64,000 bases of DNA. It comes from Botryllus schlosseri (lineage: Eukaryota). Within the stretch, counting starts at the first letter, position 1, and each line of letters begins with the position of its first letter. Location of the stretch: positions 4,836,001 through 4,900,000 of the forward strand of contig CM119373.1 of the NCBI GenBank assembly GCA_051294905.1, read 5' to 3'. Position numbers and translations under genes: made by a program. A model generated the notes under the pieces. It searched no databases and was not told the origin of the DNA. It worked only from the letters and a program-made list of their open reading frames with translations. Shown here in pieces: positions 4,554 through 40,726 of the stretch.

Positions 4554-4705
4554 ACTGTCGTAGTTGACCTCTTTTTGCTCCCTGGATAGTAGCGAGTATG
4601 ATCTTTATGATGCCAACGACTCCCGAACGCTCGTAAAAAGACTATAACGTATGCTGTACAAGGTTTATTGAACATACACAATCTGAAAATACAAGTCACG
4701 AGTGT

Positions 4706-8902: not shown

Positions 8903-8923
8903 GGTCGAGTTGTCGTGTCTGTT

Positions 8924-10738: not shown

Positions 10739-10776
10739 TATGAATATAGTGTCAAAAGTGTCGGCACTTTCGCTAT

Positions 10777-11418: not shown

Positions 11419-11537
11419 GTATTCACAAACACACTTCTATATATAACAAGGACAGGTACACGAAAAAATATGTCGATTCAGAGCGTCACGCAAACCGTCC
11501 ACACAGCGAATCTTACAATGTCCACGAGGCCGTCTTT

Positions 11538-12146
11538 TTACACCAGAAGCGAGGTGTCATAATCGACACGAGAAGACGAGGCATCATCAGGGCTCAGCGG
11601 TGTCATGGCCAAGACTCGAGGTCTACGAGGGGGAGGGTAAGGTGATACCCGGCCGGGTGACTTTTTTGTTACGATTTTAGTCAGATTCGGTCTTGGTAGC
11701 ACTGGCGACTGATGTATGTCTCTGGCACGCTGTGGTGTCGCCACGACAAACGGGGCAGTCAGATTCGGTCTTGGTATCACTGGCGACTGATGTATGATGT
11801 CTCTGGCACGCTGTGGTGTCGCAACGACAAACGGGGCGTCCACCACGGTAGGTGATGTGTCAACGGATTTAGGGGCGCGACGATCTTCTCTATGACCCGA
11901 TCGGAGATAACCCTGGTTCATGAAGCGGTATCGGGTGTTGTCGTTTCTTTCGTGAGTCAAGCGCTGATTGTGGCTCTGTACGCTGCAGGAGGCACGATCG
12001 GTTGGGTCTGTGAAGCCAACTTGACGACGATTCAAGATACGGGCATCAGTCAGCAGTCGGCTCGTCACATCATCGCCTTCATATGTGAACACAGGTAGAA
12101 ACTGCAGCTCCGTCACACACCGCAACAGGTCGTCTCGAAAGCTCAT
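11538..12146 (-). CDS. Hypothetical Pro/Arg/Ser/Thr-rich protein, 202 aa, with a two-copy internal repeat
   Basis: Open frame; repeat APFVVATPQRARDI(I)HQSPV.PRPNLT occurs twice (about 11680-11840). Confidence 0.6.
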   Translation of the reverse strand: MSFRDDLLRCVTELQFLPVFTYEGDDVTSRLLTDARILNRRQVGFTDPTDRASCSVQSHNQRLTHERNDNTRYRFMNQGYLRSGHREDRRAPKSVDTSPTVVDAPFVVATPQRARDIIHQSPVIPRPNLTAPFVVATPQRARDIHQSPVLPRPNLTKIVTKKSPGRVSPYPPPRRPRVLAMTPLSPDDASSSRVDYDTSLLV

Positions 12147-12417
12147 CCATTCTAGAACACAAAGGATAGTTACACATGTGTCGGGTAATGACTATTACTG
12201 CTTGGTTACCTGGTCTCAAGGTGGTGGCAGTGTGTAGACACTCCTGCAACTCTTTCTTGAAGTGAATCGTTTGCTGATCGGTCAGATTGTCTTCCAGCAG
12301 AATATCTTTCAGCACAGAGACACGATGCCAGTTGGCTTGGGTGTCGCGGTGAAGTCTATTGAGTGAAAGCTGGCCACAAACATGACTAATGAAATCGCTA
12401 GCTGAGTTATGAGTCAT
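12079..12417 (-). CDS. Hypothetical protein or exon starting right after a splice acceptor
   Basis: GTGTGTTATTTTTGTTTTTCCAG|ATG at 12417; open for 112 codons. Confidence 0.5.
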   Translation of the reverse strand: MTHNSASDFISHVCGQLSLNRLHRDTQANWHRVSVLKDILLEDNLTDQQTIHFKKELQECLHTATTLRPGNQAVIVITRHMCNYPLCSRMDELSRRPVAVCDGAAVSTCVHI

Positions 12418-12793
12418 CTGGAAAAACAAAAATAACACACATATTACAAACTGAAACGCCGCCTTCGAAAACTAGTCGCAAGCGACAGGCGTTGATGATA
12501 GAAAAAGCGTTCAATGTGGAATAAAATTTCACAGTGAGCACCAAAAGATAAACAATGTATGCCAACAAAATAGTGTCTTCGTTTTAACATGTCTTTGACG
12601 TGCCGCCGAAACACTATAAAATAAAATAATAGTAAGACTCCATACTTGTGTCACAATATACAACCCCACCTGTTTTTAGGAATTCCATGTGACTCGACAG
12701 GTCTTGTAGCTGAGACGGGCGAGGAGGACGCCAGCAGATTCTTGTGTCTATGAATAAACGTGCCTTAGCAACGACAGAGAGCTAAGAGCATAT

Positions 12794-13036
12794 TTACACA
12801 CCCCCAATCTCCTCCAAAATGTTTCTGAGTCTTCTGACGTCCATGTTCAAAGCCTCTATCTTCAAGACCTCAGCCAAAAGTTCCACCCGGTCTGCCCCAC
12901 ATTCGTGTCGTATGATCAGGCCAAACAGAACGCCAATCTCAAACTTGTCTTTCTGCTCGCACGGAGGTAAATGATCGTACCCAGACATGTACTCCCTCAG
13001 GGGGAAGAATTCTGCATGATCAATGTATTGATCCAT
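12794..13036 (-). CDS. Hypothetical helical protein, 80 aa, starting right after a splice acceptor
   Basis: TTCTCAG|ATG at 13036; a 28-nt micro-exon candidate lies upstream (13096-13123). Confidence 0.55.
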   Translation of the reverse strand: MDQYIDHAEFFPLREYMSGYDHLPPCEQKDKFEIGVLFGLIIRHECGADRVELLAEVLKIEALNMDVRRLRNILEEIGGV

Positions 13037-13350
13037 CTGAGAATTGCGACAATTATGATTTCAATTTATGATGAATCATAACAGTTTCAACTCACCACGA
13101 TTCCTTCTATACGCTGATAAAATCTGAAAAGAAAAAACTCATTGTATTATACAATCATGAAACACAATACGCTTTTCCCCACCTGCTGTAAGCTATTGGC
13201 CTGCGGAGTTAATGCTATCGTCTGTAAACAACGCGAGAAAACGAGCACTATTGTGAAAGATGCATAGAATAATTCGAGTCAACATGAGAGCATAATGCGA
13301 AAACAGGTTTTAAAAAAGCACAGAATACGGAAAGTACACATTTGAAAAAA

Positions 13351-16300
13351 TCATAGTTCCAAGGGTCTCGTATGAATACCGTCTGATTCGACTATTCGCT
13401 TACAGTAGAAGTGAGACAGGGCCGATCGAAATTGCTCATAGGTAAAAATGGAGGCATTTTTCCGTACAAAACCCGAATTAATATCCCCATGCGGTTTTTT
13501 CTCAAACAAAACTTTCCGGTAGATGTCAGCAGTCAGTTTGTTTACTTTTGAGAGCCCTTTGCATGAGTACTTATCCTCATTGCAATAATAAGTCTTTGCG
13601 GACAGTCCAACAAAAATATTCGATTGTGCCTCAATTTTGAAAAGACCACTGGTCCGTTGATCATATCGATTACGAGCTTTACAACAGGCACGTTTATCAT
13701 TGAACGAGAGAGGATTGGCCAAAAATTCGCTACGGTGCTCGTCACAGGCGATTGCTGGAAAATATTTGTGAAAATTTTCAAGAAATTCTGCTTGTTTTTC
13801 GGGTCGTGCAACTTTTAGCAGGCTGTCAGAGGAGATAGCGCCGTACCAGGAATCAGTGTCCGAGTATAATAGTTCAATGGACCGTGGCAGGAGGTAGGTG
13901 GACATATACGAATGGAACCGTAATAAGGCCAATTTCGCATAACCATAGACAAAGTACCCAATGTGGTTAGGTTGGCTCCAAACATGTTTTCTCAATTTCA
14001 TGGACACCTCAAAAATATCTGGTGACAACTCAATCATTGATTTAAATCTGGAGTCATTTACCAAGACCATAGCTTTTTGACGGTTAACAATCTTGACATC
14101 AGAATATTTTGTACAATTCGAGATAGTTTTACCTATACAGGAATTTGCAATGTCCTTATAGAACTGCCCCAGTGGCTTCTGAGACGGATCATCGTCAGCC
14201 CGTCTTCTAGCCTCGGTTATCGTATCTACAAGAGAATTGAAACATTCAATGGGTTCAAACTCGATAGCTTGAAATATCTTAGTAACGATTAACCCATTCT
14301 CGAGGTACCACTTCAATAGTGGTGTTATTAACAATGTTTTTGTGGCCTGCAGAGTAGCAATCAAGAATTTCCGTGGCCGTTTCAAAAAACCATGTTGTTC
14401 AGCAAATGCTTTCATGTACGGGCCTATATCATCACGACTTACGTAAGCATGTTTGAACAGGGGACAGAACTCACTAAAATGCTCCTTGAGGTGACTAGGC
14501 ACATGAATATCGACCTCAACGGCCCCAAAAAATTGATCTTTTGACACCAACTCTAAGAGTTTCGAACTTGAAAGGACCCGACATTTCACCATTTTACTGG
14601 ATTCGAGCGTTTGAATAAAGGCAGCTATATCACTTCGTTGGCACATAATGACCCATTGACATTCTGTGATGTACTCCAATTTATACCCCACTTTTTGAAT
14701 ATACTGGATTTTACGCTGCGTCGCGGCCCAGCGGGCTTGGCGATCCGGGCTGGCTCGCAACTCGCAGCCGCGACCATGGTGAAAACATCCAAACAGCTCA
14801 AGTGCAACAGGCCCTTGTGGAGTCCTATAATACCCATCAATACAAATCTGGAGCAGGCCGATACGATGCTCAGGACCATTGAATTGATGTTGGATTTTGA
14901 CCCCCCGACAGTGCGCAATGTAGCTTAGCCATTGGTGAGCCATTTTTCCATAGAGCGGTGCCGTTTTTGTCCCGGAGAATAGAGTAAAATCTTCATTAGG
15001 TGACCACAGACAAGGATAGCCCCCCGGTAATCGTGAACGGAGAGTATCCAAATAAAGACAATTCGAATCCAGACCTAGCACCTGTTCTACAGGTAGAGCG
15101 CTATCGCCATAGATTTGGGGTTTGATTTTTGTGACTTTAGCCTCTGCATATCGCAATGAAACAACGGAAAGCCCGCCACGTAGATTTTCACGTATCAAGG
15201 TGTGTATATGGCTATACTTTTGATTCAACAAAGTGAATACAGGTGGTATGCTATTAAACACAAACCTTGAGGCCAGAGAGGGCAATGATATACCGTCTTT
15301 ACTCATGTCAATTGAGTAACGAGCAAAGAGTTGCTTGTGCTTTGTGAGGGCCTCCAGTAACGGGCCGACATCTAAACTGACATAGAAAGAGAGATAGTCA
15401 CGAAAAGTAGTCATTTTATGTTCCGCCCACTTTGATTGACACCAAAGATATTGTTCATCAGTTATATTAGACCGTTTCAGTTTGTTATAAAAATGTATGT
15501 GGTCTGGGAGAGATTTTTCATCCAATACTGATAAATCAGTGAAATAGTTATATGGAAAAAAAGCCTTCGTTGAAGCACAGTTATGACAACGTGTGTATGC
15601 GTCATAACTTGTGCCAGCGCCAAGATACAAGGTCACATCCAAAAATCGAAATCGATTAGTCGACAAGGACATATACGACGTGCCCCTCTTAATAATACTG
15701 ATAGGGTCTGATAAGTACTCCACCAGATAGGGGATAATCAAAGGTATATCATAACGAGACCCATTGAAAGAGAATACAGGTAATTGACTCAAATAATTCA
15801 AAAAACGATGTTTCAATAAGGTCGCTGGGCTCATACGTTTGACATCCGGCTCAGCGGTATGCATTTCTTCAGCAATAAAATCTAATCGTTCCAACACGTC
15901 ATAAAATTGTTGACATAATGCCTCAAAACACTCACTTTGGATCAATTCAAACCGCGACATCATTCTAGCAACCAGCGCTCCCGGGTCGCCATCACTAATC
16001 AGTACTTCTGGGGTCTCGTACCCTGGGAAATTACAGGCGAAGGCCACCGCGGCCGGAATATGACAGTCCACATAGTGCACATTAGCAGTATCGTTTGGAG
16101 TCGAGCCTTTTTGTAATATACTCTCATAGTCAAAAACCAAGTTATATGGGTAGAAACGAGATGGTTTGGGCACAATTATCCCCAACTCGTCCAACGCTTC
16201 AAATATAGTAGGCTCGGGTTTGAACATACCGCCACGATAGTGATTAGGAATACCTCTAAAACAATTATGGCGATCGAGGAAGTATTTTGAACTGAACAGG

Positions 16301-17232
16301 CGATGACAGGTCTCACAGCTATAATTCTTGCAATACGAGTTCACGTTTTTAATATAACATGAATGTCTTCCCCCCTCTAAATGAACGTTAATTTTCAACC
16401 CCTACCGAGCACCGTGTCGTAGTATATACCCGACTCCTTCTTTCAATGTATAGACACAAATAGATACTTTAAGACATGACTCGACTTTATGTAAATCGCT
16501 CATACATACACCCGAGTCGGGGTCCCCATATAGAGCGGAATATTGTGCCACCAAAGAGAGCGTTTTAGATTGCAAGGCATCATCATCACGATAATTACCA
16601 CCACAAAGCATAACGGCAACACAGCGGAATATACAATAATTATCATCATATGGTACACCGCGTCGATTTTTCACTAAGGCTAGAATAACATGTGAATTAG
16701 CAATAGCCTCCGGCATGTTGAATGCACTACACCCAATTAATCTGAAGTCTGATTTGTACACATAAAAGGTAACGTTTGTGACTTCCAAGACAACAAATTT
16801 AGTATTGTCTCTTTGAAAGCGAGCACTCTCGAAGCCAGCGGCCAAGTCTATATCGTCTACAAATTGGTCAAAGTCACTACGATTGGCAATCATTTTAGGT
16901 GTATCCAACATAACACCTGCGTTCTCGGACGCATGATAGTATCTCAATTCGCTTGTCTCGACATTATCAAGTAGGAACCCCAGAGCGTAATTGATTCGAA
17001 AACCATACTGTTGTGAGATGAAGATGTCCTGTAGATCGTTGATGACGTCACTGGGGTTGCGGCCGAGTATACGGAAATTGTGTAGACTGCGTATACTGTG
17101 CGGGGCCAGTGTCGAGCTGCGAATGGAGTGCCAGTTTTCTTCCACGATCTCGATCAGATTTTCAGGTATACCCAAGCTGCTTGGTTGTGCAAAATCAGAC
17201 ACAATTCTAACAAGGCGTCGTCGCCTAGACAT
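13351..17232 (-). CDS. polB: Protein-primed DNA polymerase B polyprotein (terminal-protein region, vOTU-like protease, Zn finger, exonuclease, polymerase with Vsr-like nuclease insert); one in-frame TAG at 16402-16404
   Basis: ORF-track entries 16402-17337 and 13351-16398 share a frame (…GAR*GLKIN…). Motifs DDNYCIFRC, HSCYIKN, CxxC..H, VFDYES, FNGSRYD, LDSNCLY, KDIANSCIGK, YSDTDS, LSAKTY; insert IQHQFNG..IDGY..ELFGCFHHG..ITECQW. Confidence 0.93.
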
Positions 17233-17343
17233 TCTGGAAACAAAAAACACACAATCAATAACAGGTAGCACAAAACACACATAAATACATATGATATTAC
17301 AGCATAAGTATGTGATTAAAACACGATAGTACACCAAAAACAG

Positions 17344-17829
17344 TTACACATTCGTATAAAATTTCATGGTAGCTCTGGCAGCTGACATCTCTTTGAGAAA
17401 GGCAACTTTCGCACGCATGATGCGTTCCAGGGGTAATTGCATACGCAAATCCTGGCCGTTCGACTGAGATAGTATCTGCGAAATTTCTTGCTCTATCCGG
17501 TTATAATCTTGAGTGAATGTTTCATGAGAAGGAAAACTAGATCTTGAAAGTATATCATCCACTTCCCCCAGAATAGTGAACATCGAGTCAGATGGGGCGA
17601 TTGAAATAGCCTCAACAATGGTCGCCTTGAGGTGCTCCATCATTCGTCTACTATATTTACCAAACCTCTCACCCCCAGGTCTACGTCTGGATGGGAATAC
17701 AGGAGGTTGGGCTGGATTTTCTACATTTTCTGAAATATCATTTGCAGGGCTAATCGCATCGAGCAGGTCTACCGGATAACCACCTTCCATCAATTCTGGT
17801 ATCCCGTTATCAGCCATAGTCATGAGCAA
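17344..17829 (-). CDS. Hypothetical 161-aa ORF, possibly the first coding exon of pPolB
   Basis: Open frame upstream of pPolB; its stop codon lies inside a candidate 114-nt intron (17234-17347). Confidence 0.65.
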   Translation of the reverse strand: MLMTMADNGIPELMEGGYPVDLLDAISPANDISENVENPAQPPVFPSRRRPGGERFGKYSRRMMEHLKATIVEAISIAPSDSMFTILGEVDDILSRSSFPSHETFTQDYNRIEQEISQILSQSNGQDLRMQLPLERIMRAKVAFLKEMSAARATMKFYTNV

Positions 17830-17847
17830 AGATTTGTGATGGTAAGC

Positions 17848-18210
17848 TCAATTTACACTTACTTATAGACACTGTAGCCACATGACAAGCAGAAGAAGGG
17901 ACTCATCACAGTTTAACAGTGCCAGCAAAACGAGGAAAGGAATTTTATGACCCTCCACTCGCCTTTTCCCCCAACCACTTGAATATACATACAAGCCTCT
18001 TTTTTTCTCTCGTGCCATACTCGCATACCCAATTTACGCTTACTTATAGACACTGTGAGCCACATGACAATTGGAAGAAGGTATTTAAAACAGTTAAATA
18101 GAGCCGGCAAAATTCGGCAAGAAATTTTATGACACTCTAATCGGCCTTTTTCCCCCCAACCATTTGAATATAAATACAAGACTCTTTTTCTCTAGTGACA
18201 TACTTACAGG
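17848..18210. promoter_or_regulatory. Divergent promoter region built from a diverged tandem duplication of about 182 bp
   Basis: TTACTTATAGACACTGT...CCACATGACAA and ATTTTATGAC...CCCCAACCA.TTGAATATA.ATACAAG each occur twice; TATAAATA at 18169-18176 upstream of the ATG at 18223. Confidence 0.6.
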
Positions 18211-26368: not shown

Positions 26369-28591
26369 TCAGTTTTGTTCTTCTGATTGATGTAGATGCA
26401 GAAGGGTATGATGTCTTTTACCACAATCGGCTTCTTCACACCTAGATTGACTTTTACATACTTTTGCAATATGTCCTCGTATTAAGCAATTACAGCATAA
26501 CCCTGCGTTCTTCACAATCGCAACACGTTCTGCAGTCGGTTTGTCGATGAATATCTTGCATCTAGCTATTATATGATCACCTGAGCATGATGGACATGTA
26601 CTGTAGTTTCTTGTTCTTAGCACATTCCTATAAGGAGAGGTTTCTTGTTCTTTGTCGGTAATGACCGCATGGGTAGCATGTGAGTATACTTTCTTGTGGA
26701 TATGTTGTTTACCCGTGTCATCATTCTTTTTAGATTGCATTGCCTGATGCATTGACGAATTGGCAATCTTGGCTATTTTTGTCACAAATCTTAGCAAATC
26801 AAGAAATGTAACATCTTTCTGATTAGCTTCACATTCAGCTGCCACATCTTCCCAATTGCTGTGATATTTTGTTGGCAGTCGACATGATAACTTCACAATA
26901 TTATCAAAGGTATTCAAATCTTGAACCCGACATAAGTGTAGTGAAACGAGATAACACTCTTTCATCTTGTTCGCAAGGTCATTTAATGCACCAGCATCAT
27001 CATATTTAATAGGAGGTGCTCTGATTAATTCATCAAGAAATTTTCGTGAAATAATAATCGGGTTACCATATTGTTCGTCCAAAATTTCCATCGCTTTAGC
27101 GTAGCCTTCAGTTGGTGGGTACATGGAACAATGCTGAATCAATTCTTTTGGTTTTCCGTCACAGTATTGTTGCAACAATGCTAGACGTTTTCCATTGTCA
27201 AATATCTTCTCTACAACATTTACTTGAAATGACTCTCTGAACTGCGCATATTGGGTGATGGAACCACTGAATTTCATAATTTCAATTTTTGGAACATTCA
27301 TAGCAGAGGCTATTGCATTTGCCAAGTCAGTAGCAAAACTTGTATTATTTACTGACATTGAAACTTGTGGTGGTACTGCAGGAGCAGATAGAATAGGGAT
27401 ATCGTATTCTTTCGAGGCACATGCTTTGGACGGTGAACTGTTCATGATATAATTTCCAACTTCATGGTCCTCCTTTTGAGGAATTAAGCTCATAGGATCG
27501 ATTGGTGGAATGTCACTACTCATTGGAATGAAGGAATGTTTGATGTTACCTTCAGCTGTACTCTTGGATTTCGCAGTGGTATTCATCGGCATCGGCACTC
27601 CCTTAGTTTCTCTACTAATATATTCTTCATCAGCGTTTTCCCATATCTCTGCCTGCAAACATGCTGCTTCATATTTGTGCTGTAATTCCATAGCCCTTTG
27701 TTCGGCTTCTAATTCTCTTTGCTTGGTTTCTAATTCTCTTCGCCTGGTTTCTAGTTCAACCTTTTTTCGTAATTGGGATAATTCCAATTTTGCAAGTTCT
27801 CTCAAGGCAATAGCTTCTATCCGTCTTGTTGCAGTAGATGAATAACATAGTGATGAAAGACTAGATCCGTGTGATCTGTCAGATCTTTTGATATTAGTTG
27901 ATCTCTTACACCATTCCTGAACGTCATCCTTCATATCTTCATACATCCAATCATTGATATGTAATTTGGCTTCTTGAAATGCCTTGACTTCATTTTCATA
28001 CTCAAGTTTGATCTTCACTGTCTGATCTCCATCTTCATGGAGAAGACTTACACAAATGTTCTTTGTACATGAATACTCATCAAAGACTTTGTCAATTATT
28101 CTTGATTTCGATATCACCAAGCTTCTATTTTCTTTGTTAAGCATGAGATTCTCCACTTCTAAATATAGCTGCTGTAGGTTCTTGACCATCATTTGCAGCT
28201 TCATGATATTTGCATTGACATCTTGAGTCATCATGTGTTCTTGTTGCAAATTCATTGCACTTGTATTGGCAGCATGTGCCATCATGGTTTCTTGTTGCAA
28301 ATTCACTGCACTTGTATTGGCAGCATGTGCCATCATGAGTTCTTGTTGCAAATTCATTGCACTTGCATTGACATCATGTGCCATCATGGGTTGTTGTTGC
28401 AAATTCATTGCACTTGCATTGACATCATGTGCCATCATGGGTTCTTGTTGCAAATTCATTGCACTTGTATTGGCAGCATGTGCCATCATGAGTTCTTGTT
28501 GCAAATTCATTGCACTTGCATTGACATCATGTGCCATCATGGGTTGTTGTTGCAAATTCATTGCACTTATATTGGCAGCATGTGTCATCAT
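26369..28591 (-). CDS. gag: BEL/Pao Gag (DUF1759-type core, three C-terminal Zn knuckles), 740 aa from the ATG at 28591
   Basis: PKIEIMKFSGSITQYAQFRESF, LLQQYCDGKPKELI, AMEILDEQYGNP; CPSCSGDHIIARC, CCNCLIRGHIAKVC, CEEADCGKRHHTLLH; stop soon after the last knuckle, no pol. Confidence 0.92.
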   Translation of the reverse strand: MMTHAANISAMNLQQQPMMAHDVNASAMNLQQELMMAHAANTSAMNLQQEPMMAHDVNASAMNLQQQPMMAHDVNASAMNLQQELMMAHAANTSAVNLQQETMMAHAANTSAMNLQQEHMMTQDVNANIMKLQMMVKNLQQLYLEVENLMLNKENRSLVISKSRIIDKVFDEYSCTKNICVSLLHEDGDQTVKIKLEYENEVKAFQEAKLHINDWMYEDMKDDVQEWCKRSTNIKRSDRSHGSSLSSLCYSSTATRRIEAIALRELAKLELSQLRKKVELETRRRELETKQRELEAEQRAMELQHKYEAACLQAEIWENADEEYISRETKGVPMPMNTTAKSKSTAEGNIKHSFIPMSSDIPPIDPMSLIPQKEDHEVGNYIMNSSPSKACASKEYDIPILSAPAVPPQVSMSVNNTSFATDLANAIASAMNVPKIEIMKFSGSITQYAQFRESFQVNVVEKIFDNGKRLALLQQYCDGKPKELIQHCSMYPPTEGYAKAMEILDEQYGNPIIISRKFLDELIRAPPIKYDDAGALNDLANKMKECYLVSLHLCRVQDLNTFDNIVKLSCRLPTKYHSNWEDVAAECEANQKDVTFLDLLRFVTKIAKIANSSMHQAMQSKKNDDTGKQHIHKKVYSHATHAVITDKEQETSPYRNVLRTRNYSTCPSCSGDHIIARCKIFIDKPTAERVAIVKNAGLCCNCLIRGHIAKVCKSQSRCEEADCGKRHHTLLHLHQSEEQN
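28230..28591 (-). repeat. About 7 copies of a 51-bp coding repeat (17 aa, MMAH(A/D)(A/V)N(T/A)SAMNLQQ(E/Q)x) at the Gag N-terminus
   Basis: Directly visible periodic sequence. Confidence 0.95.
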
Positions 28592-28649
28592 GTATTCTTT
28601 TTGGTCGAAAGTTGTTATTGTTAACTTTAATGTAACAGTTACTTTAGAC

Positions 28650-31600
28650 CAGTGGTTCTTAACCTTTTTTCCTCCAGCGCCCCCTTTCAAAAATTATCGT
28701 GCTCCAGCGCCCCCCAACCTCATATTGTAAGGAATGTAATAAATACAATGAGTAAGAGGGAGGGCCGTAACAGCACTTCGTCAACCCCCCCCCCTAAAAC
28801 GATTGCCTTGCGCCCCCAAGAACCCCATAGCGTGATTTCGATGGTCAGCAGAGTTTGTGTGGCCTGGTCGCCCTAGGTACCAAAATTTTCTATAATGCAT
28901 GAATGAATAGGTGGTATATTTACATATATAAGTCGCTATAAACTCTTTATCCTCTCAGCCCACGTAATCAGATTTACCAGTAGCGCTTAGTGAGCTTTTG
29001 TATGGGAAAATAAAGGGCACGTAATTAATAATTAAACATATTCGGGCGTGCCCGTAGGTACAATTAATTCGTTTCCAGGGCGGTAACAGCACTTCGTCAG
29101 CCCCCCCCAAAAACGTTGGTCTTGGGCCCCCCATCGGGTGATAAACCAAACTTCCGAGGCGCTTTGCCCCCAGACCCCATTCGGCTATCCGCTATTTGCT
29201 GATACTAGTCATCTACATTAGGTGTCCATTTACTGAGGCAGCTATTCTCGCCTAGACGCGCGAAAAATTTCAGTAATTAATCATTGAATTAGTCAATATG
29301 ATCGGTAATTGCATGTATATTGAGATCAATTTTTATCCTCTCTCTGCTCACGTAAACAGATTTACCGGTAAAGCTGAGCGATGTGTGATTGAAAAGGTAG
29401 GACCCCTCAATAATAATTATACATCTTGGCGTATACCCGTTGGCAGGAACGAAACGGCACTTCGTCAGGCCCCGTAAAAAACCTGGGTCTTGGACTCCCA
29501 TTGGGTGATAAACCGACCGCCCCCCATCACGTTGTTCGCTTTTGCACGGAATCAGCTGTACGTTTTGGGAGCCAGTGCGAAGCGCGAAAACTTTCGATAA
29601 TTCATGATAAAATTGGTCAGTAGGATCGGGAATTGCATATATATTGCCATCAATTTCTTGTCCTCTCTGCTCACGTTACCAGATTTACCGGTAGAGCTGA
29701 GTGAGGTGCAATGTTTCCTCTAAGCTGTGCACGTACGCAGTGCTGACACGGTCTCTGCGCACAGAAAATCTACGTTGCGCACAACAAATCCGAAGTTATG
29801 GCCTTTTTTTAGTCGTTACGCACTGTTGTCCAAGGGTCAGCGCAGTGAGCTGTATAAAGCGAACATTGTGAGGTGTCTTGGTAACTGCAGGGCCCGTAAC
29901 TAATAAATAAACATATTTGGGCGGGCGAACCCGTTGGTATGACTTCGTTGCATGATGTTATTTCCAGAGGTGGTCACAGTAGTCAACAAAGCTACTCAAG
30001 TAGAAGTAGAAGTAGCGACGGAAAAATCTACTCAAGTACAAGTAGAAGTACTTCTTCCATAAGCTACCTGAAACTACTTGAAGTAGAAGTAGAATTGACT
30101 GACTTTAAATCTACTCAAGTAAGTAAGTAGTTGTGAAAACGATCGTAATTCGTTCGCATTGATTGTCAAAAACTGCAAATTGAGCTATGCGAAAGGTGCA
30201 GAGCTTGATTCATATTGATGCATACCAGGAGGCATCCAATTTTTGACAGCCCAAGCGTGTTCGTCCGCATAATGGGATGAAAATTATAGCATAGATATGG
30301 GAATCCGATACTAATCCTCTGTTCACTCGAACAGCACGTTTTAGAAAATATCATGGTATGGCACCCTCCCCCATATTATAAGGCCCGTAGCTTAGTTGAA
30401 GAGCGATTCGGCGAAGTTGTATCGGATACGGTGTAAGTAAACACTTTGCGCGGTTAGTAAACGTTAATAAAAAATATGGTTGATTAGAAAAATGCGATAT
30501 TGTGTAGCTTTATTTCGGGAAATTAAAGGCATTGCCCCACTTGCGTTTATATTTAATCGTGTACGTTCTTCAGACAAAAAACTGATACTAATTAGAACTC
30601 AAAATATGATACTGGGAATTGAAAGTGAAATATATACTACTTCTGAAAGTGGAAAATCTACTTCATGTCTTTAGTCCAGAAAGTTTCAAAGGCTGTATGC
30701 AAAAGCAGGTATAAAGCTAAAAAAAAGTCAGAGCCCACTGTTCCAGATCAGGACACTTCATGGAGTGCTAGACTACGATATAATAAATGCTAGATTGCGA
30801 AACATCAGTTTCAAACGCTATGATGGACCAATGGACCATATATACCGTGATGAAATATTTCATATGGGCGACAATGTGGTGTCAACGGAACCACGCAACC
30901 CGCTACCTAAATTATATTCACCGATATACTTTCGTGAAATCATATTGGTCGCTCCATATCCACCGTGCGCGAAGCGCGACAAAAATTCTGGGCTTACTCA
31001 ACTTTTCTAAAAATTAAATTTTGATACTCCATGAAAACAGCCCAGAAATTCCTCAGGCTATCTTCCTGATTGGAATATTAAACTACTTCTACTTTACAAA
31101 CTGAAAAGTAATAGGTAACAAAATATTATGAAGTAGAAGTAGAAGTAGCGAAAATTAGTTCTACTTGAGTAAGTACCAGAAGTAGAGGAAAACTACTTGA
31201 GTACTTCAAAAAAGTAAAAGTACTTCGTTACTGACCACCTCTGGTTATTTCGTGACCTCCTGTCTGCTATATCAAAAAATATAGAATCGTCCAACAGGAA
31301 TATCTAGTTTTAGATATCCCTGTCGCCCAATCGTACTAAACTAAAAGACGCACACGGTTTCAAATTGGTATTTCTTCACTGGCATATAATTTTTCCCTGC
31401 CAGATGGAATTCGTCTTCTGGGGTTCAGATTGCCAAGACAGGAACATTCGATGCCAGTCATTTAGGCGCCCATGGACAATTAATCCGATATGTATTTTGT
31501 AGGCTATACCTAACGAAGGTTTCGGTGTTAATTTGCTCTGAATACTCGTTAAGGATATGTCCTACCACCACATCATCTACTCTTTCTACTGCGAAGCCAT

Positions 31601-31730
31601 TTTTATCCAGCGCCCCCCATACCGCCCCCCTGAGCCCAACGCCCCCCATATCGCCCCCTGAGCGTTTCCGCCCCCTTCAAAATCGTCAGCGCCCCCTGGG
31701 GGGCGCTTGGGGCAAGGTTAAGAACCACTG
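28650..31730. mobile_element. Non-autonomous hAT (Buster-like) element inserted in the BEL 5' LTR
   Basis: TIR CAGTGGTTCTTAACCTT / AAGGTTAAGAACCACTG; TSD CTTTAGAC (28642-28649, 31731-31738). Confidence 0.93.
29965..31243. mobile_element. hAT MITE nested in the 28650-31730 element
   Basis: TIR CAGAGGTGGTCA / TGACCACCTCTG; TSD GTTATTTC on both sides; AGTAGA/TACTT subterminal repeats. Confidence 0.9.
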
Positions 31731-31888
31731 CTTTAGACGATTGGAGTCGATTGTAGACTGCTACATTATTGTAAGGCTGCTCAGCGGTCTTGATGCTAAC
31801 ACGTCCCTCTTGGCATCTTTGTATCAGTCATTAAACGGTTTATGATATTTATTGGAAACGGTTAACAATAATTTAACTCGCTCTAAAC

Positions 31889-32773
31889 CAGGGGTGGGCA
31901 ACATACGGCCCGCGAAGGGATTTTCTCCGGCCCGCGGACAGTTTTCCGTCTTATATGATGGTGTGGCCCGCGGCCCAAGTCATCATCCGAGATTCCCCAC
32001 TACTTGCTTACATACGTCAAATGTTAGTGACTGTATGTCATTATATATATGTATGCGCATTGCGCACTTGCGCAGCGAGCGAGGGTGGAGCTTATGCGTA
32101 AATCCGTCGAAGCGAGAGGACTTGTTGCATTATCAGCATTTACGATGTACTCAGCCCTAATGTAATTTGTGGTAATTATGATGGTGTTTGTCGACTAAAA
32201 TGCTCATTTACACGAGGCCGATATTTCTTATTTTTGATTCCATAACCGTCGACTTGTAGCACGGCACACTTCTAGGCTGTTGTAAGACACCGCTTATGCC
32301 AAGAGTAGCCAACTCAAAACGGGTCTGGGGCCACTTCTAAATTTCGTGGAAGCCGCGGGCCGCAAGAATTCAATATCGAGATAAAATAGGCCACATAGCT
32401 GAACAGTGAACAACCACGCTATGTAATGACTAAGGACTTGATATCTTGGTAAACTTGGGGAATACCGGGCTTATCGAACGCCTTGAAATCTTAATTAAGA
32501 ATTGCACCGTGTGTTGATTGATCAGGGAGAAGCAGTTATTATAGTGGTGCCTGTATGACAATGCTGTTCTCAAATCCATATTTTCTTCGACATTACTGGC
32601 GAGAAATGGCTTTGAAGTTACATTGCTGTCGTTAAAATACATTCATTAAATACGATTTATTCCTTGTATATGTGGATAAATGGGCGAATAATGTATCGAT
32701 TCAGCAATCCGGCCCGCCAAGTTCTTAATTTTCCTATATCCGGCCCGCCGACTGGAGAAGTTGCCCACCCCTG
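31889..32773. mobile_element. hAT (Buster-like) MITE, second insertion in the BEL 5' LTR
   Basis: TIR CAGGGGTGGGCAAC / GTTGCCCACCCCTG; TSD CTCTAAAC; GGCCCGC subterminal motifs. Confidence 0.93.
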
Positions 32774-32954
32774 CTCTAAACGAAAAGAATATAAACAAAT
32801 TAAAACACGATCCTTCGGGAACCACACATTTCCTGGGCCCGACACCGAAAACATGTGCGGGGAAAACCCCGGCACGTGACTGCAGTTATTCACCCGTTAC
32901 AGATGCATCTGAGCTACACATGTGCAATGTGCATGTGTTGTGCATACAGTATCT

Positions 32955-34659
32955 ATACATGGTCGCGACCCACCATTTTATGAATCGCGTGTGACGATTG
33001 CCGAGTATCTGCGCAATTACACCGTCACCCGCGGGTCGCGCGCCCATAAACGCCGTGCGACCAGACCTGTCTTGGTAGGGCTGAAATTCGTGTCCGTTCT
33101 GAACGCCGTGTACTTTTTTCAAGATGCCCTTATGTATACCCCGTTCCGCAGCCTGGAAGACTTGTTCCACGACGCGTACGCCACCTTGCCGTCGGAACTG
33201 CGTATGTTTTCGTTTGCTATATGCAACAGGTCAGAGTTCTGGTCACAGGTCAGAGTTCTGGTCCAACAGGGCTAACATTCTTGAAGTGTGCAGCGTTCGC
33301 GGGGATAGGGCCCACTTTGCGGAGACTTTCGTTTCTTGCTTTGCCAGTTATTTCCAGGTGTGGAACGGCTACGTCAATGGAACTTTCACGAACGCCGAAC
33401 TCGAGAATCCACCGGAGGACGCGTCAAGTCGTATTCCTTTGTCGCCGATGCAATCGGTATTCGTTGAGCAGGTTGTGGCGGCCGTGCGCCGTAGGACATC
33501 TGACGACGTCGAGACTGTGCCCCCTGCAAACGCGGAACGGAGACCGTACCACTTGTTGTGTGGCCCGCACGGTACGGGAAAGTCGTTGTGCCTTACCCGC
33601 TTTGTGGTCCTTTCTCAGGAGGAAGGTGCTCGTGTGCTAGTCGTTGCGCCGACCGGACTACTCGTTTCTACCTACAAGGCAAAACTGGGACGCGACGTTA
33701 CGTGCGAGACCGTACACGCCGCGTTTCTCATAAACGTCGGAGAAGAGGGTTCGCGTGTCACAAAGGTCAACTGGAGGTTGCGTGAGTACGACCTCATCGT
33801 AATCGATGAAATCTCTATGATTTCGGTGCGTAACTCCAATCATGTTGACTTGTGTCTGCGCAACGCTGCTCCCGAAGCCGTAGTCGCCTTCTTTGGGGAC
33901 CAGCGTCAACTTCAGCCTGTCGAAGACGATGGCGCTACGGGAAGCATGTTCAGCAACAGGTCCCTGATGTCACAGTGTGAGCGAATAACTCTGTTGCATC
34001 AGTACAGGACGTCTGACGCGGCCTTGGAACGGTTTCTCGGTCTTTGCCGTCACGGTCGACCGTCCGAGATGCAGCTAGCGGCCTTTGCTGAAGGTAAGGT
34101 ACTCCTCGATACCGACTACGCGACCGACGAGGGCCTTTCGTCGGTTCGCACGTCTCGCCCGGACCATCTCGTGATCGCGTTCACCAACGCTTCTGTGCGC
34201 AGATATAACGTCCTGGCCAGGGATGAACTGTTTGCAGACGAGTTGCCCGAACTAAATGGACGTTATCCGACGTGCGACGGTGTGCCTGAGCCGATTTACG
34301 TGGGTATGCAGGTCTTCCTGACGGAAAACAGGCAGAAGGCACGGTCGTACGTTAACGGTGTCGTCAAGGCTACTGTCGGCAAGACCGTTTTTGTTCAAAT
34401 CCCTTCTGGAACGATGATTCGCGTATACCCCGTGCGATCCCCCAAGGGTGTGTACTATCCGTTTGCTTTAGCGTACGCCTCGACTATCCACAAGGTTCAA
34501 GGACAGACTCTGGACAAAGTCGAGGTGTGGTTCGATCGGATACGTGTTCCGCCGGGCTGCGCGTACGTGGCTCTGTCTCGGGTGAGGCGTTCCGGGGACA
34601 TCCTTTTTATGGTTACTCCGCTCACCTGCCACTTCGACAACGTCCGTTTCGACACTTAA
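32955..34659 (+). pseudogene. pif1: PIF1-family (SF1B) DNA helicase, 5' part missing or undetected, frameshifted by a 19-bp tandem duplication (33226-33263)
   Basis: Walker A GPHGTGKS, VAPTGLL, ETVHAAF, LIVIDEISM, FFGDQRQLQPV, LLHQYRT, VFLTEN..VNG, PFALAYASTIHKVQGQTL, AYVALSRVR; upstream frame YFFQDALMYTPFRSLEDL joins once the duplication is removed. Confidence 0.9.
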
Positions 34660-35301
34660 TTGGCGTCGCCTGTTCCGTGCTCATTCCATGTTTATGTTAT
34701 CTTTCCTTAGTTAGGTGATTCTCAATGCGTTTATGGTACGTGCACGAGCCTCCCCGTGGCAGAATCGGTAACGCGTACTTGCGGCTAATACGTGCTGAAA
34801 CCTATTCCGTTGTTGCTCTGTCGCTTACGTGAACCTTTGCTTTTCAGACGGAGATGGATTAACGACGGTGCGTCGATCCGTTCGTTACTTACTGTCATAT
34901 CTCTCTCTCGTTTCTCGTGCGGTATCTTTGATTCAAATATAAACTCGTAATACCGTTTCATACGTTTGTCTTTGGCCTCGTTGTCGACAGAGTTGTCATG
35001 AAAGGTAGTCAGGTCGTGCCGGGTCTCGGATGCAATCGTCATCGTTTAGAACATGTCAAAGTTTCCAACAGAACTTGGTAAAAAAATAGCCCCGGCGAGC
35101 CGCCGAAGTGACCCCCCCCCCCCCCGAGACCTCAAACGAACCCGCACATGTCCGACCGTCACGGTCTTGTTGCAGTTCGAAAAATTTTATAAAAAAAAAA
35201 TGGGCGAGCCGCCGAAGCGACTCGCCTTGAACAAATGGAACAATAAGAAAAAACCAACATAAACAATCACCCGCGTTTGCGTCACACTGTGTCAGTATGA
35301 G

Positions 35302-35511
35302 TCATTTATCGGTTGGCCCGTCGAAGTTGTCAGCCTCCGACTTTCCGCTTGTGGAACCGATTTCACTGCCGGAGCTTTCGGTTGATTCGCTGTCGACCGT
35401 GCTGACTATCAGCATCTTTCTCGGTTTGTTAGACCCCGGCTTAACCGAAACGATTGCGATATCGCTGTCGCTACTCATGTTGTAGCCCGGTTCATCGGCA
35501 TTGAGCAGCAT
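35302..35511 (-). CDS. Small Ser/acidic-rich ORF, 69 aa, directly after micro-ORF Z1
   Basis: ATG lies 2 nt after the Z1 stop (TGA TC ATG). Confidence 0.35.
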   Translation of the reverse strand: MLLNADEPGYNMSSDSDIAIVSVKPGSNKPRKMLIVSTVDSESTESSGSEIGSTSGKSEADNFDGPTDK

Positions 35512-35513
35512 GA

Positions 35514-35657
35514 TCAATTGATCATTCTTTCTCGTTTTGCTTTTTCTTGCAGTTTTATTCTTTCCATTTTCTTCGCCATTTGGCGATCTCGCCGTTCCGC
35601 GGACTCTTTGTCAAAGCCGCACATGGTGCAGAACCATCTATGATCATAATTATCCAT
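35514..35657 (-). CDS. Micro-ORF Z1, 47 aa: MDNYDHRWFCTMCGFDKESAERRDRQMAKKMERIKLQEKAKRERMIN
   Basis: Manual translation; preceded by acceptor TTGTTTTTCGCAG|AAATAATG; HxWxCxxCG motif shared with Z2, followed by a charged helix. Confidence 0.55.
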   Translation of the reverse strand: MDNYDHRWFCTMCGFDKESAERRDRQMAKKMERIKLQEKAKRERMIN

Positions 35658-36192
35658 TATTTCTGCGAAAAACAAGATCTCATGTTATTCGTCAGGTTTT
35701 CGATCGCCTCTCAGACAGGGGCCGGGTCGACGCCCGCTCATGCGATCCCCTAGCATATTAGTAATTTTTCAGAAACCCTGGTGACTTTTTTCGGCTCGGC
35801 CGACTTCGAAAAAAAGCGACGGCACACCGCCTCGAGCGCATTACAGGCCCGGATGCGATATATCGTGCTTTGAGCGTCGCTCGGTCTGGCCGTGAGGCCG
35901 AGACGTCCAACTGAGTTTTTCGGACATTGATCGATTTCAAAAAAAAATTGCGAAAAAAAATGGCCCCGACGAGCCACCGAAGCGACCCGTCGAGACCCCA
36001 ACTGAAACCGTCACCTTCACCTTCACCGTCACCGATATGTCAAATCCGAACTATTGCGCCGAACTATTGCGATAACGCAAAGTCGATATCTGTAATGTGG
36101 TCCCCCACGACTCGCCTGGCAAAATCTCGAATTCTCGCGAGGAGTTCTCGCATTGCAAGTCGTTTACGCATTTCGGAGTTATCCCTTCGCAG

Positions 36193-36333
36193 TCACAGTT
36201 CGTCGATGTGGAGCTGACTTCTCTCATAATCACAATCAGACGCCTCTTCCTCGGCCGGATCACGTGCGCTCGTGCGCGGCATCCCACACTGGGAGCATAC
36301 CCATTCGTGCTTACATTTAGGATTAGCGCTCAT
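36193..36333 (-). CDS. Micro-ORF Z2, 46 aa: MSANPKCKHEWVCSQCGMPRTSARDPAEEEASDCDYERSQLHIDEL (frame stays open for 42 more codons past the TGA)
   Basis: Manual translation; preceded by acceptor TTTGCGTTTACAG|AATTAAAATG; CxHxWxCxxCG motif. Confidence 0.55.
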   Translation of the reverse strand: MSANPKCKHEWVCSQCGMPRTSARDPAEEEASDCDYERSQLHIDEL

Positions 36334-38068
36334 TTTAATTCTGTAAACGCAAAGTCATAGCGTTATGCGAGGCTGAACGATATCATCGAGCCGGGGTGAA
36401 GGCCGGGTAATCAACCCGCTCATGCGGCCCCCCACCACTTTAGTCCTTCTTCAGAAACCCTGCTGACTTTTTTCAGCTCGAACAAGTTCGAAAAAAGCGA
36501 CAACACGCCGTCTCGAACGCCTTAGACGCCCGCCTCCGACATATCGTGCTTGGGACTCGCTCGGTCTGCCCTTCAGGCCGAGGCGTCCGGGCGACTTGTC
36601 GGACTTGGTCCGATTTCGAAAAAAAACTTGGCGAAAAAAAGAGACCCGATCGGCCGCCGAAGCTCGACTTCGACCTCGAAGTCCGACTTTTCGAAAAAAA
36701 AAACTGGCCGAAGCGATCAGCCGAGACTCGATCAACATTTTTTGGTCAAAGTTCACGGACCACCTGCTCCCCGCAAATAGCCGTTCCGTGCCAAGAGAAG
36801 TCGGCCATCCCACTACTAAGGGTGCGGTGGGTGTGGTTTAACGGAAACGGCGGGAACAATCGAAAATTCTGGAAGCTTCGTAAATACTCATAAAATGTAT
36901 GTAGTATGGTGTTTTAATCTGTTCGGAGGAGTTTTATGTTGCAACTTTTCTCTATACTTTTCATGCAGCTTTTTTTCTGCAACTTGCGCAAAATATGCTA
37001 TAAAACTATGATAAAGAATAAATTGATGGATTTCAAGTGACAATGCGGCCCACCATAGGCGCCGGACGCAGGTATACTGGGTATGCCGTGTTTACCTAGC
37101 AATGTTTTCGGGTATGCGGCATACCAATTTTTCTGTTAGTCATGAAACTCCTGAAGTTACTGGTAAATTGTGCGATTCGGAAATAAGCCATAGCGTTGCC
37201 GTGCTATTGCTTACGTGAGCAAATTATTAACACATTGATGAAACGTGAGTATAATTAGAAGACACGACGCGGCACGACACGACAAGACCGGGAGCTTGAT
37301 AAAGCTTGATAGAAAATATGTTGATTTCTACACGCGCGAAATGTTGTAATTGTGGAAATGACCCGACCAAACATCAGTAGGCTACAGAAAAGTGTATGCC
37401 AAATTGTTAAATTGCCAAGCAACTTCATGCCCTGTGGAGCGAAGTTTCAGCATACTACGCAAACTGTTGGCAAACGATCGTAATTTCTCCGCCGACAATG
37501 CCTGGAAATATTTATATATTTCTAGATACTATATGTAAATAGATCGCTTGATCGTTAAAATTTCAGGTGTTTTCCTATTTCTCGGACGCCCAATCGATGC
37601 GATCGAAAATGATATTTAAACTGGGTCACCTTTTCCAGGAAGCCTTGGATTATGTTTGCAGACCTAGGGAGGTGGTTTGGTGATGTGATTTCGGGGGAGT
37701 ATCGCTTATTTCGATATCTTCTTGCTGCTTTCATGTAGGTTTCAAACCCCATGTAAATAAAAACGAGCAGATTTTAAACTACTGGAACCTTTCGAGTATC
37801 TCATACCCTCATGATTTCAAATAATTGTGTAAATGCAACTTCTGCAACTTTCGTTGAAATTAAAAAATAAATGCAGCTTTCTCGGGTTTTCAGTGCAACA
37901 AAAACTTGCCCTAGTGATAGCCTGGTGGCTTACGAACAATATCGCAGGCGAGCGAAGACACATTCGGCAAAAACCTATATCGAATTTATTGATATTTCGG
38001 GATGTAACCTCAGAAACCGATGCATTGAGAGACGTCATCGCAGTCGGGTATGTCCACCGGGTGTCCGG

Positions 38069-40726
38069 TAAAGATGTATGGATCATGGTCTTTTGGGATC
38101 CTGTTCCAATCCTGATCCTGTTTCTATCGCAGATTTCAGTATCCGAGTCCAAAAATAATCCTATTTACGGAAATTGCTTCATGATCCATGTTACTATGAG
38201 TAGCGGTAAAATTTATATTACCATAGGCCTAGGAGATCTGAAAAAAATAACATCAACAGAAGTTGAGGGCAGGATGAACTTCAAAATAATAGTTTACCTG
38301 ACTACAAACGATGAACAGTTGATTACTGAAATTGTATTCAAGAACTGCAGCATGGTAATCGTTAAGATACATAGTACATACATACTGAAAAAATCCTGAC
38401 ACAATCAGACTGATCTCACTTGAAAATATCCTCACCCGCACTTTTCAATACAACTAAACCATCTAAACTATCAGCTGAGAGTAATGATCTTTTTTTGTCA
38501 ATAGCATTCCCACACAAACTGAACGCCCTTTTACTGGATGCACTTGATGCAGGAATACTGATTAGCCCAACATCATGTCTACTGAGATTTGGATGTCTGG
38601 CAATTGTGCTTGAATTTGTCCAATACTTCAGTATGCCGATGCCATCCCCTATCTCTGAGTCACTCAAAGGACTCTTAATATAGTCTTCGAGCTCATCAGT
38701 TGAACTTTGAGATGATACTTCCTGCCAATGGAGAAATTCGTCATCAAAACTGTGTAGTTTTTTCTTGAAAGGTGGCTGTTCATACGCATGGTCTTCATGA
38801 ACAGTATTTGATGAGCTGCCTGATGCACAAGCTTGATCATGATCATAATCGATAGACGATTCTAGTTCCTTTAGGAGTCTACGCGCCAAACTGTGTATCT
38901 GATCCTGCTTATAGAAGCTGAAAAGGGTATCAGTGACTTGTAAATGTGATTAAGAAAGAGGGCAAGCAAATGTATATTACAGATCTCAAATTTTGCTTCA
39001 AGACATCGTAGCCCACGTTCTTTTAGAAACTTCAAAATTTGGCTGTCAGTGATTGAAGGAGCCATTGACACCTGAAGAGCATGGGAGCATTGGTATTCTC
39101 GGTGTATGGTGGGGGTTATAGTCACCCTCCAGACGCTTTGTTGCATCATAGAATGGTTGTAAAAAGACAATTAGTGTCCCCAACAACACCCAATCAATAG
39201 ACAACAGCTTAGATTCATAAGGTGAACTCGGCAGCACAGTGGTCAAATCGTTCTGAGTACCACTGAATGATTGTAACATAGTGAATGTAGAATTCCATCT
39301 GGTTTCAACACTTCGTTTCAGGCTGCTAGGTAGACTGTTGTTCAACCCAGTACGCTTGATGTAACCAGTTATTGAGTTCACTGATGATACTAGCTCTTGA
39401 ATGCGATTTACATGACTCATCTCAGTACTCTCTGGTGTTACGACATCAACAGTCTTGCTCAAATGATGCAATGCAATGCAATGGGTAATGCAATGCAATG
39501 GGTGACTCAATACAGTTGCAAGCATGTGGCACGCACACGGTATACGATTGAAATCAGCCAACGCAACCTTTGTATTGCTGCGATTGTCTGACACGAAAAA
39601 TATCTTTGAGATGACACTATGCAGTGAAAGAGACAACAGGTGGCATGTGTTAATTATACTTCGCTTGATATTCCCACCACTCTTTTTGCCTTCGAATTCA
39701 TACACTGTCAAAGTTCTACTTTTTTCAGTTTACCACCTGCCACATAATGGACCGTGAGAGACACAAAATGACGGCATTTGATGTCAGTCCACATATCTGT
39801 AGTTATTCCAATAAAACCATTTCTGCAAATTGCATTTCTCACTTCTGACACCACTCTTTTCCTAACTTCGCCAGCCGTTTGAACTACTTTCCTCTTCGGA
39901 GTATTCCTATCAGGAATAACAGTTTTGGCATCAACTTTACCATGCTTTGCTCCCACTTCAATTAATGCATATGCCAACATCATAAAACCTTTCCCCTCAA
40001 CTGCTTTTAGAGGTCGGATGTCTATAGCAGTTAATGCCACTGCCGCATCAGTGACCTTTTCTTTGACAGCTTTGGGGACATCAAGTTTTTTTTAAATATC
40101 CTGTCAATTTTGTGCTAGCTCGCATTTTGGAATTTCCACTGCATGCCAGCAAATGGTTGCGGAGATGTGTCGTCCCACTGAGGGATTTATCGTACTTAAC
40201 TGGCTCGTTACATTGGCAGCACAAAACATATCCAGCATATTTCCTATCTTGCTTGTGTACCTAGTGCCGGAATCGTCTCCAAACATCACTTTTCGTTTTT
40301 GTGACGGTATTTTCATCAGCTGCAACAACGTCATTGCTAGCTATCAATTCTTAAATCTCTGACATTCTGAATTAGACAATAACCCCAAATGATATCAAGA
40401 TCTGACATCTGACGAAAGAGCAGCCCAAGACACTTCTGCCGTAACGACTTGAAATTTCCTAAGCGGAAAATATATGATAATAATCGACTTTTACATGTAA
40501 GAAATAGACTTTATAAACTCCGAGAATATAAGTTATACCTCTGAATCAAATATACTTGTCATGATTCTGATCAGGTTTTCGTCAAAATAAAAATAAATAA
40601 AAATAATGTCCTGATCCGGATCCGGCAAAGCGGGGAAATTTGGAATCCGGATCCAATCCTGTTGCCAAAACATCACCCGGAATCCTGACCAGTTAGAATC
40701 CAAAATCCCGATCCTGTACATCTCTA
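38069..40726 (-). mobile_element. Decayed autonomous-type hAT (Ac/hobo/Hermes-like) transposon
   Basis: Imperfect TIRs TA(A/G)AGATGTA..GGATC; 8-bp TSD GTGTCCGG/GTGTCTGG; GGATC/GATCC subterminal repeats. Confidence 0.85.
38416..40334 (-). pseudogene. hAT transposase, frameshifted
   Basis: DIRPLKAVEGKGF, GITTDMWTD, FVSDNRSN, PCACHML, VETRWNS, LQPFYDATKRLEG, IPASSASSKRAFS spread over several frames. Confidence 0.92.

Follow-up and report, generated by a model that had tools for sequence, protein, structure and literature searches.

The region analysed here lies in a 64,000-nucleotide (nt) stretch of the genome of the tunicate Botryllus schlosseri (assembly GCA_051294905.1, contig CM119373.1, positions 4,836,001 to 4,900,000; hereafter the window, in whose numbering coordinates are given unless another contig is named). 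It is probably the accessory-gene arm of a rolling-circle transposon of Helitron-like type, present here as a dead copy, in which two self-contained mini-genes, here called Z1 and Z2, each follow a repeated non-coding block (Table 1). These orphan genes are kept under selection across a diverged family, and are framed by near-copies of a presumed promoter core of the ribosomal RNA genes (rDNA) and by rDNA-style terminators. Transcripts from a sister copy carry a spliced leader joined at the Z1 acceptor and end at a hairpin and T-run, and another family member is precisely inserted in a 28S rRNA gene. We infer that the rDNA niche is the home or the origin of this family, whose promoter and terminator may have been borrowed there. 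The copy in the window is dead, its transposase and both mini-genes being broken, and the biology described below is therefore historical for the window itself. Helitrons are known for capturing host DNA, whereas little is known of Helitrons that have their own accessory genes and a dedicated system to express them, and we found no published description of an rDNA-like promoter combined with trans-splicing in this kind of transposon.

A genome-wide search returned about 10 loci in the 495-Mb genome that match the region at 65-93% identity. No alignment to the window reaches left of 32992 or right of about 36862-36867; because the copies on contigs 13 and 16 run on to the left for several kb more, in sequence that the two have in common, the window copy is 5'-truncated. 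What the earlier note on this DNA had called a PIF1 gene is the helicase half of the element's Rep-helicase; in the window the Rep part is gone, and a 19-nt tandem duplication (33226-33263) interrupts the frame. Between C13a and C16, the full copies from contigs 13 and 16, the Rep-helicase is 82% identical over 757 amino acids, and comprises three conserved coding segments, the helicase open reading frame (ORF) last, separated by frame-changing gaps of about 26 nt that resemble short introns. The full copies encode FLTVSPYE, RGTVHVHYIAW and LKYIAGYVAKF ahead of the PIF1-like helicase, the three-motif pattern of a two-tyrosine rolling-circle Rep. Scored unspliced, the element's own sequence gives two collinear matches to Pfam Helitron_like_N (13.0 and 14.7 bits, at profile positions 91-162 and 173-189, against a cut-off of 28.9), which are sub-threshold and split because an intron divides the match. 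An exhaustive search from the Rep side yielded 545 relatives; of seven scanned from among the best, six are proteins of 1000-1250 amino acids with Helitron_like_N above its curated cut-off, together with helicase domains. As the Rep motifs precede a PIF1-like helicase, and the relatives carry both domains, the family is Helitron-like, a mobile element in keeping with the helicase-encoding element that the earlier note had proposed as host.

The family shares with Helitron-like elements (HLEs) a Rep of the HUH, two-tyrosine type fused upstream of a PIF1-like helicase, and the habit of a multi-copy, gene-carrying DNA transposon. It differs in its compact transposase of about 1150 amino acids with introns, in the orphan zinc-knuckle mini-genes behind rDNA-like cores, and in its ends. 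Elements of the HLE1 type begin with 5'-TC, end in a hairpin plus CTRR and insert between A and T, and those of the HLE2 type have terminal inverted repeats of 11-18 nt and insert between T and T (PMC11417382). Neither the 5'-TC nor the hairpin-CTRR end of HLE1 was found, the 3' end here reading ...CGAAAAT(G), and the 28S insertion lies between T and A (...GGGAT^AAC...). No clear HLE2-type terminal inverted repeat was seen at the shared start of homology, in sequence that stops 854 nt short of the full copy's true 5' end. The metagenomic sequences that hold the nearest helicase relatives by search show no zinc-knuckle ORFs in their gene contexts, which were uninformative.

A further ORF of 497-517 codons lies upstream of the Rep-helicase in a fuller copy, with a homologue in C16; it is 80% conserved at the amino acid level over its first 235 residues and has a low-complexity tail of Arg, Ser and acidic residues. 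The 497-residue form has no match in Pfam or in the protein atlas searched. This ORF raised the question of an endogenous virus, a candidate that was rejected as no capsid-like or viral signal was found and the Rep relatives are of the Helitron type.

From the letters of the window, the earlier note had described a unit that occurs twice on the minus strand, with a micro-ORF at its end. We recovered both direct-repeat units (period 680-682 bp; common stretches 35733-35996 and 36415-36671, 80-82% identical) and both micro-ORFs (35514-35675, HRWFCTMCGFDKESA; 36193-36333, HEWVCSQCGMPRTSA), which share an H-x-W-x-C-x2-C-G motif, and the observation is therefore real. Each unit runs through a hairpin and T-run, a spacer of about 150 nt, a 38-nt core, an outron (the leader segment ahead of the acceptor) of about 90 nt (35665-35754 for Z1), an acceptor 5-7 nt before the ATG, and the ORF, to the next hairpin and T-run. 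A repeated regulatory block ahead of each small gene of zinc-binding type, as was proposed, is thereby supported, and the succession of YAG, a short A-rich stretch of 5-7 nt and ATG is conserved between copies.

Both genes are broken in the window, and are best understood from their sister copies. An 8-nt insertion splits Z1 into ORFs of 53 and 71 codons, the latter being, by comparison with intact copies, the C-terminal half of the same gene; in addition, its first Cys codon has become TAT (Cys to Tyr), as the earlier note had suspected, and reads TGT in sister copies and in the RNA reads. For Z2 the same note had suggested that a TGA derived from CGA, with coding sequence continuing beyond it. 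Comparison of copies gives another account: the stop after ...EL is common to all copies because this TGA belongs to a conserved GTGAGT splice donor, and the downstream reading is exon 2, which encodes ...LRELLARIRDFAR..HITDIDFALSQ. The intron (GTGAGT...CAG, about 57 nt) is conserved in C13a, C13b (a further family copy) and C10, and is shortened with both splice sites in C3_30M; in the window the donor reads GTGACT, and a 19-nt deletion has removed the acceptor.

Z2 is followed by Z1 in at least six copies, and no copy that covers the whole region departs from this pair of genes or from their order. The ratio of nonsynonymous to synonymous substitution (dN/dS) is 0.2-0.37 for Z1 and 0.09-0.31 for Z2, in comparisons between lineages that are 65-75% alike and whose synonymous sites are near or beyond saturation. 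The zinc ligand pattern (C/H)-x-H-x3-C-x2-C is invariant in intact copies; the first ligand of Z2 is Cys in one lineage and His in two others, an alternation that would be expected of a metal ligand. Z1 and Z2 are thus real, paralogous genes under purifying selection, and the ORF conservation that the earlier note asked of a dN/dS comparison is present. It is very improbable, for the family, that the region is a decayed tandem duplication without function. That description does hold for the window copy, in which both ORFs and the helicase are broken, and the constant content of the array between copies also counts in its favour. It is contradicted by dN/dS values well below 1 at saturated synonymous divergence, by conservation of the intron, the acceptor and the zinc ligands, by spliced-leader-bearing transcripts from a sister copy, and by the homogenisation of the two blocks within lineages. 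The earlier note had named unconserved ORFs or constant cassette content, together with a lack of transcripts, as pointing to such decay: cassette content is indeed constant, but the ORFs are conserved and transcripts exist, from the sister copy.

The predicted products of both genes are small proteins with a putative N-terminal zinc knuckle and a helix. Z1 consists of a C-x-H-x3-C-x2-C knuckle, a long helix and an acidic, Ser-rich tail; in an AlphaFold (AF2) model, residues 17-56 form a helix between a short knuckle and an acidic tail that is disordered, with only moderate confidence over residues 1-15. Two hydrophobic cores flanked by Ser and Asp in this tail resemble SUMO-interaction motifs. 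Neither Z1 nor Z2 has a Pfam match, a profile search of 5.8 billion proteins found no homologue of Z1, and comparison of Z1 with the protein atlas gave only sub-threshold PHD-finger look-alikes, which we did not use. As profile and atlas searches found no relatives of either protein outside this genome, the label of effector that the earlier note had attached to them is unsupported.

RNA evidence comes from four runs of the same species, aligned to positions 32900-36900 at a likeness of at least 88%. Appreciable signal appeared in only one run (X6), with about 150 reads, nearly all of them 90-95% alike to the window and for that reason attributed to a sister copy. At 25 of 29 variant positions these reads agree with the C13b lineage, and the change from TAT to TGT at the Z1 Cys codon is among them. 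Upstream of 35664, 39 reads contain a template-switch oligonucleotide tail and then GATTGGAGTATTTGGTTGTATTA, which together with the genomic AG makes exactly the 25-nt chordate spliced leader (consensus listed in PMC3795323). Since these reads join the leader there, the YAG, A-rich, ATG layout of Z1 marks a spliced-leader acceptor that is in use, as had been predicted from the letters. At Z2 the corresponding site is conserved, and reads are too few to support it directly. Some reads end in A-runs resembling poly(A) at 35194, a position within the T-run of the hairpin downstream of Z1. Neither the helicase nor the outron is represented by reads in the four runs over this interval. As a side observation, the 22-nt spliced-leader sequence has 614 dispersed matches in the genome, on both strands, against 0 for a reversed control; these could be spliced-leader RNA genes or retro-copies.

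The 38-nt core links the cassettes to rDNA. In local alignment with rDNA, the Z1 core scores 77, against 22 +/- 2.7 for shuffled sequence, and likeness to rDNA is confined to this motif. Each element has two cores, 79-92% identical to rDNA and conserved above the surrounding sequence; within the cassette, conservation is highest in the core (0.93) and stands at 0.6-0.7 in flanks and ORFs. Every rDNA unit has a single instance of the motif, which directly follows the spacer subrepeats and an A/T-rich zone and precedes 18S by about 820 nt; genome-wide it is found outside rDNA only in this transposon family. From that position we presume it to be the promoter of RNA polymerase I (Pol I). The rDNA also offers counterparts to the hairpins and T-runs of the cassettes: the 3' end of 28S is directly followed by a 14-bp GC hairpin and T6 (folding z -4.85), and the rDNA motif is preceded, at a distance of 100-130 nt, by runs of T10 and T6; the 7.1-kb transcribed region holds a single T6 run. 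The cassette thus repeats the layout of an rRNA gene, from upstream terminator and promoter through to terminator.

Two of the five window hairpins are strong (z -5.4 and -6.2) and three are decayed; downstream of Z1, for example, z is -5.4 at 35188-35226 and -0.6 at 35079-35117. Across copies the stems are maintained by G.U pairs and by compensatory changes (in C10) on the gene strand only; as they pair through G.U, only the strand opposite the transposase folds. The two blocks of C10 are 91% alike to each other but only about 55% like those of the window lineage; the blocks are thus homogenised within element lineages. Copies that are about 55% alike further upstream still show 90% conservation in the Z2 outron (36343-36436). 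An Rfam scan of positions 30000-40000 at E<=1 returned only a chance L20-leader match, and no known ribozyme or RNA family. RNA polymerase III was considered as the polymerase and rejected, because the polypyrimidine tract ahead of the Z1 ORF contains a T5 run.

A short hairpin marks the end of Helitrons (PMC11417382), and the blocks pile up at the right end of the element, with three tandem copies in C16. They might on these grounds be duplicated 3'-terminal hairpins, left by bypass of the element's end during rolling-circle transposition, rather than transcription signals. We consider this very improbable, as G.U pairing allows only the strand opposite the transposase to fold, the hairpins are followed by T-runs and not by CTRR, RNA 3' ends map at a hairpin and T-run, and hairpins also stand between the genes, well inside the element.

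Less credible still, and to our minds close to dismissed, is the earlier note's comparison with integrons, in which recombination would exchange variable effector genes between repeated blocks. The likeness is a repeated non-coding block ahead of each small gene, with repeated blocks flanking each one, and a copy that has lost both units, apparently by a deletion ending in hairpin blocks, adds to it. Against the analogy stands the fixed gene order, with Z2 and then Z1 in each copy that covers the region; there are no novel cassettes, and neither an integrase or other recombinase nor attC-like imperfect inverted repeats at cassette borders were found. Each gene has its own promoter-like core. 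Variation in cassette content between copies, which had also been anticipated, is limited to the loss of both units in the copy inserted in 28S. A third block, said to precede an ORF of 85 codons, proved to hold two hairpin and T-run pieces, but it has no promoter-like core, and the ORF is not a third cassette.

The most direct link between the family and rDNA is a 10,214-bp member inside a 28S gene (C16:22298640-22308853), between ...GGGAT and AAC.... The 28S sequence stops at C16:22298639 and resumes at 22308854 with 100% identity and no base lost, and the element abuts it at ...CCACAGGGAT. The insertion site lies in the peptidyl-transferase region; precise insertion is seen in this one copy, a single case of what may be a specific site. 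The mini-gene strand is co-oriented with rRNA transcription, and incoming transcription first meets three tandem hairpin and T-run units. The copy has an open Rep-helicase ORF and is without Z1 and Z2, a loss that looks like a deletion, since the missing segment is bounded by repeated hairpin blocks. On the minus strand of its left part, a promoter-like core precedes a piece resembling the external transcribed spacer (ETS) at an rDNA-like spacing (548 nt, against 543 nt in rDNA); ten or so tandem repeats of 70 nt follow further on, and then a hairpin and T9. This left part looks like a miniature rDNA leader. A second rDNA-type array, whose 28S is 96% identical to that of the main array and whose units are spaced about 17-19 kb apart, was noted on contig C30.

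Together, these features allow a mechanism to be proposed. A family resident in, or derived from, the rDNA niche would have taken up an rDNA promoter and terminator; its mini-genes would be transcribed in that niche, probably by Pol I, and the trans-spliced leader would then supply the cap that makes the transcripts translatable, much as in trypanosomes. Transcription of the cassettes by Pol I, as deduced from their sequence, we advance tentatively and with less than even confidence. The full proposition, that a chordate transposon expresses protein-coding mini-genes from copies of the host rRNA promoter and terminator, as Pol I pre-mRNA capped by a spliced leader, is possible though rather doubtful. 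Its main rival, which we also think rather unlikely though possible, holds that the 38-nt core is the element's ordinary promoter for RNA polymerase II (Pol II), that its counterpart in the rDNA spacer was left behind by a transposon or is a fragment retained by chance, that the mini-genes are standard trans-spliced Pol II genes, and that the hairpins are incidental or serve mRNA stability. As is usual for Pol II products, the mRNAs undergo splicing and trans-splicing and seem to be polyadenylated, and rDNA spacers are reported to hold transposon remnants (bioRxiv 10.1101/2023.02.20.529178). On the other side, the motif occurs exactly once per rDNA unit and at the place expected of a promoter, the hairpin and T-run design recurs after the 28S 3' end, the core and ETS-like piece of the 28S-inserted copy keep the spacing of rDNA, and a family member is precisely inserted in 28S.

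Several observations weigh against expression from a borrowed rDNA system, some of which also favour an ordinary Pol II promoter. With TAATAT at its end, the core might serve Pol II as a TATA-like element; the rDNA motif is presumed to be a Pol I promoter from its position only, and a polymerase cannot be assigned from sequence. Most family copies lie outside rDNA, and the single copy inside 28S lacks both mini-genes. RNA support is thin, coming from a sister copy in place of this locus and covering Z1 well and Z2 barely, and the loose poly(A)-like ends at 35194 agree at only 0.77, which amounts to moderate support. Finally, the termini of the element, as they can be read, appear to fit neither described type of Helitron.

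Among known systems, the R2 and R1 retrotransposons occupy the 28S niche and depend on rDNA transcription. They differ from the present family in being co-transcribed with 28S and released by a ribozyme, with neither a promoter of their own nor accessory mini-genes. The nearest described analogue is Pokey, a piggyBac transposon of Daphnia that inserts at a specific 28S site, has copies stranded elsewhere in the genome, and carries 2-5 spacer-derived repeats thought to act in transcription (PMC3849761). Pokey belongs to another superfamily, and what it repeats is a 200-bp piece of spacer that precedes its transposase. In the present family, separate accessory genes on the opposite strand are framed by a short core and terminator-like hairpins, and trans-splicing is involved. 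In trypanosomes, the variant surface glycoprotein (VSG) and procyclin genes are protein-coding units driven by an rDNA-type promoter, their cap being provided by a trans-spliced leader (see PMC8748868). These units may serve as a working model only, as they are host genes of a protist whose use of Pol I is proven, whereas here the candidate is a chordate transposon.

If the mini-genes were indeed transcribed by Pol I and capped by the leader, this would be a mode of expression so far established only in trypanosomes, and the family would be a second kind of rDNA-specialised DNA transposon beside Pokey. It offers a testable case of how a DNA transposon adapts to the rDNA niche, and of whether, with the help of trans-splicing, animal mRNA can be made by a polymerase that is not Pol II. 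So compact a promoter and terminator module might also find use in tunicate transgenesis.

Table 1. Features of the Helitron-like element and its mini-genes in the window.
Feature	Position	Strand	Remarks
5'-truncated, decayed copy of Helitron-like element	32992..36867		Copies genome-wide share the right end near 36862-36867; unrelated repeats on both flanks
Helicase half (PIF1/RecD-like SF1) of Rep-helicase	33124..34659	+	Pfam AAA_30 and PIF1
85-aa ORF, doubtful coding status	34785..35042	-	ATG not kept in diverged copies; frameshifts and stops in several copies; no promoter-like core upstream
Two hairpin and T-run elements downstream of Z1	35079..35226	-	35188-35226: strong 10-bp stem, UUCG loop, T10; 35079-35117: decayed
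Z1 gene, broken here	35302..35657	-	Single exon, 113-115 aa; intact in C13a and C13b
Spliced-leader acceptor AG of Z1	35663..35664	-	Exon start 35662, 5 nt before ATG; 39 reads join leader here
38-nt rDNA-promoter-like core, Z1 unit	35755..35792	-	35/38 identical to rDNA motif; same orientation as ORF
Strong hairpin (16 bp, UUCG loop) and T-run	35953..35997	-	z -6.2; downstream of Z2, about 160 nt upstream of Z1 core
Z2 gene, broken here	36064..36333	-	Exon 1 36197-36333, intron remnant 36154-36196, exon 2 36064-36153; intact about 77 aa
Predicted spliced-leader acceptor of Z2 (tttacag)	36341..36342	-	7 nt before ATG; kept in all copies but one (deletion there)
rDNA-promoter-like core, Z2 unit	36437..36474	-	Matches rDNA less well than Z1 core
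Two decayed hairpin and T-run units	36633..36727	-	Just inside the element's right end

The 85-aa ORF has no Pfam match. Between it and the helicase stop lies a non-coding stretch of about 95 nt (34700-34795) that is near-invariant in all copies, including those only about 70% alike elsewhere, and within it, at 34717 on the plus strand, template-switch-tagged cDNA 5' ends were seen in run X11. Outside the element, fragments of a transposase-like gene on the minus strand (38416-40224), which by eye may be of hAT type, adjoin it, and the ORF at 26369-28690 carries DUF1759. At 4700-17900, the window holds dense minus-strand ORFs, among them one with an rve-type integrase match, an ATPase-like ORF and one of 1015 codons; this run looks Polinton/Maverick-like, and separate from the Helitron-like element.

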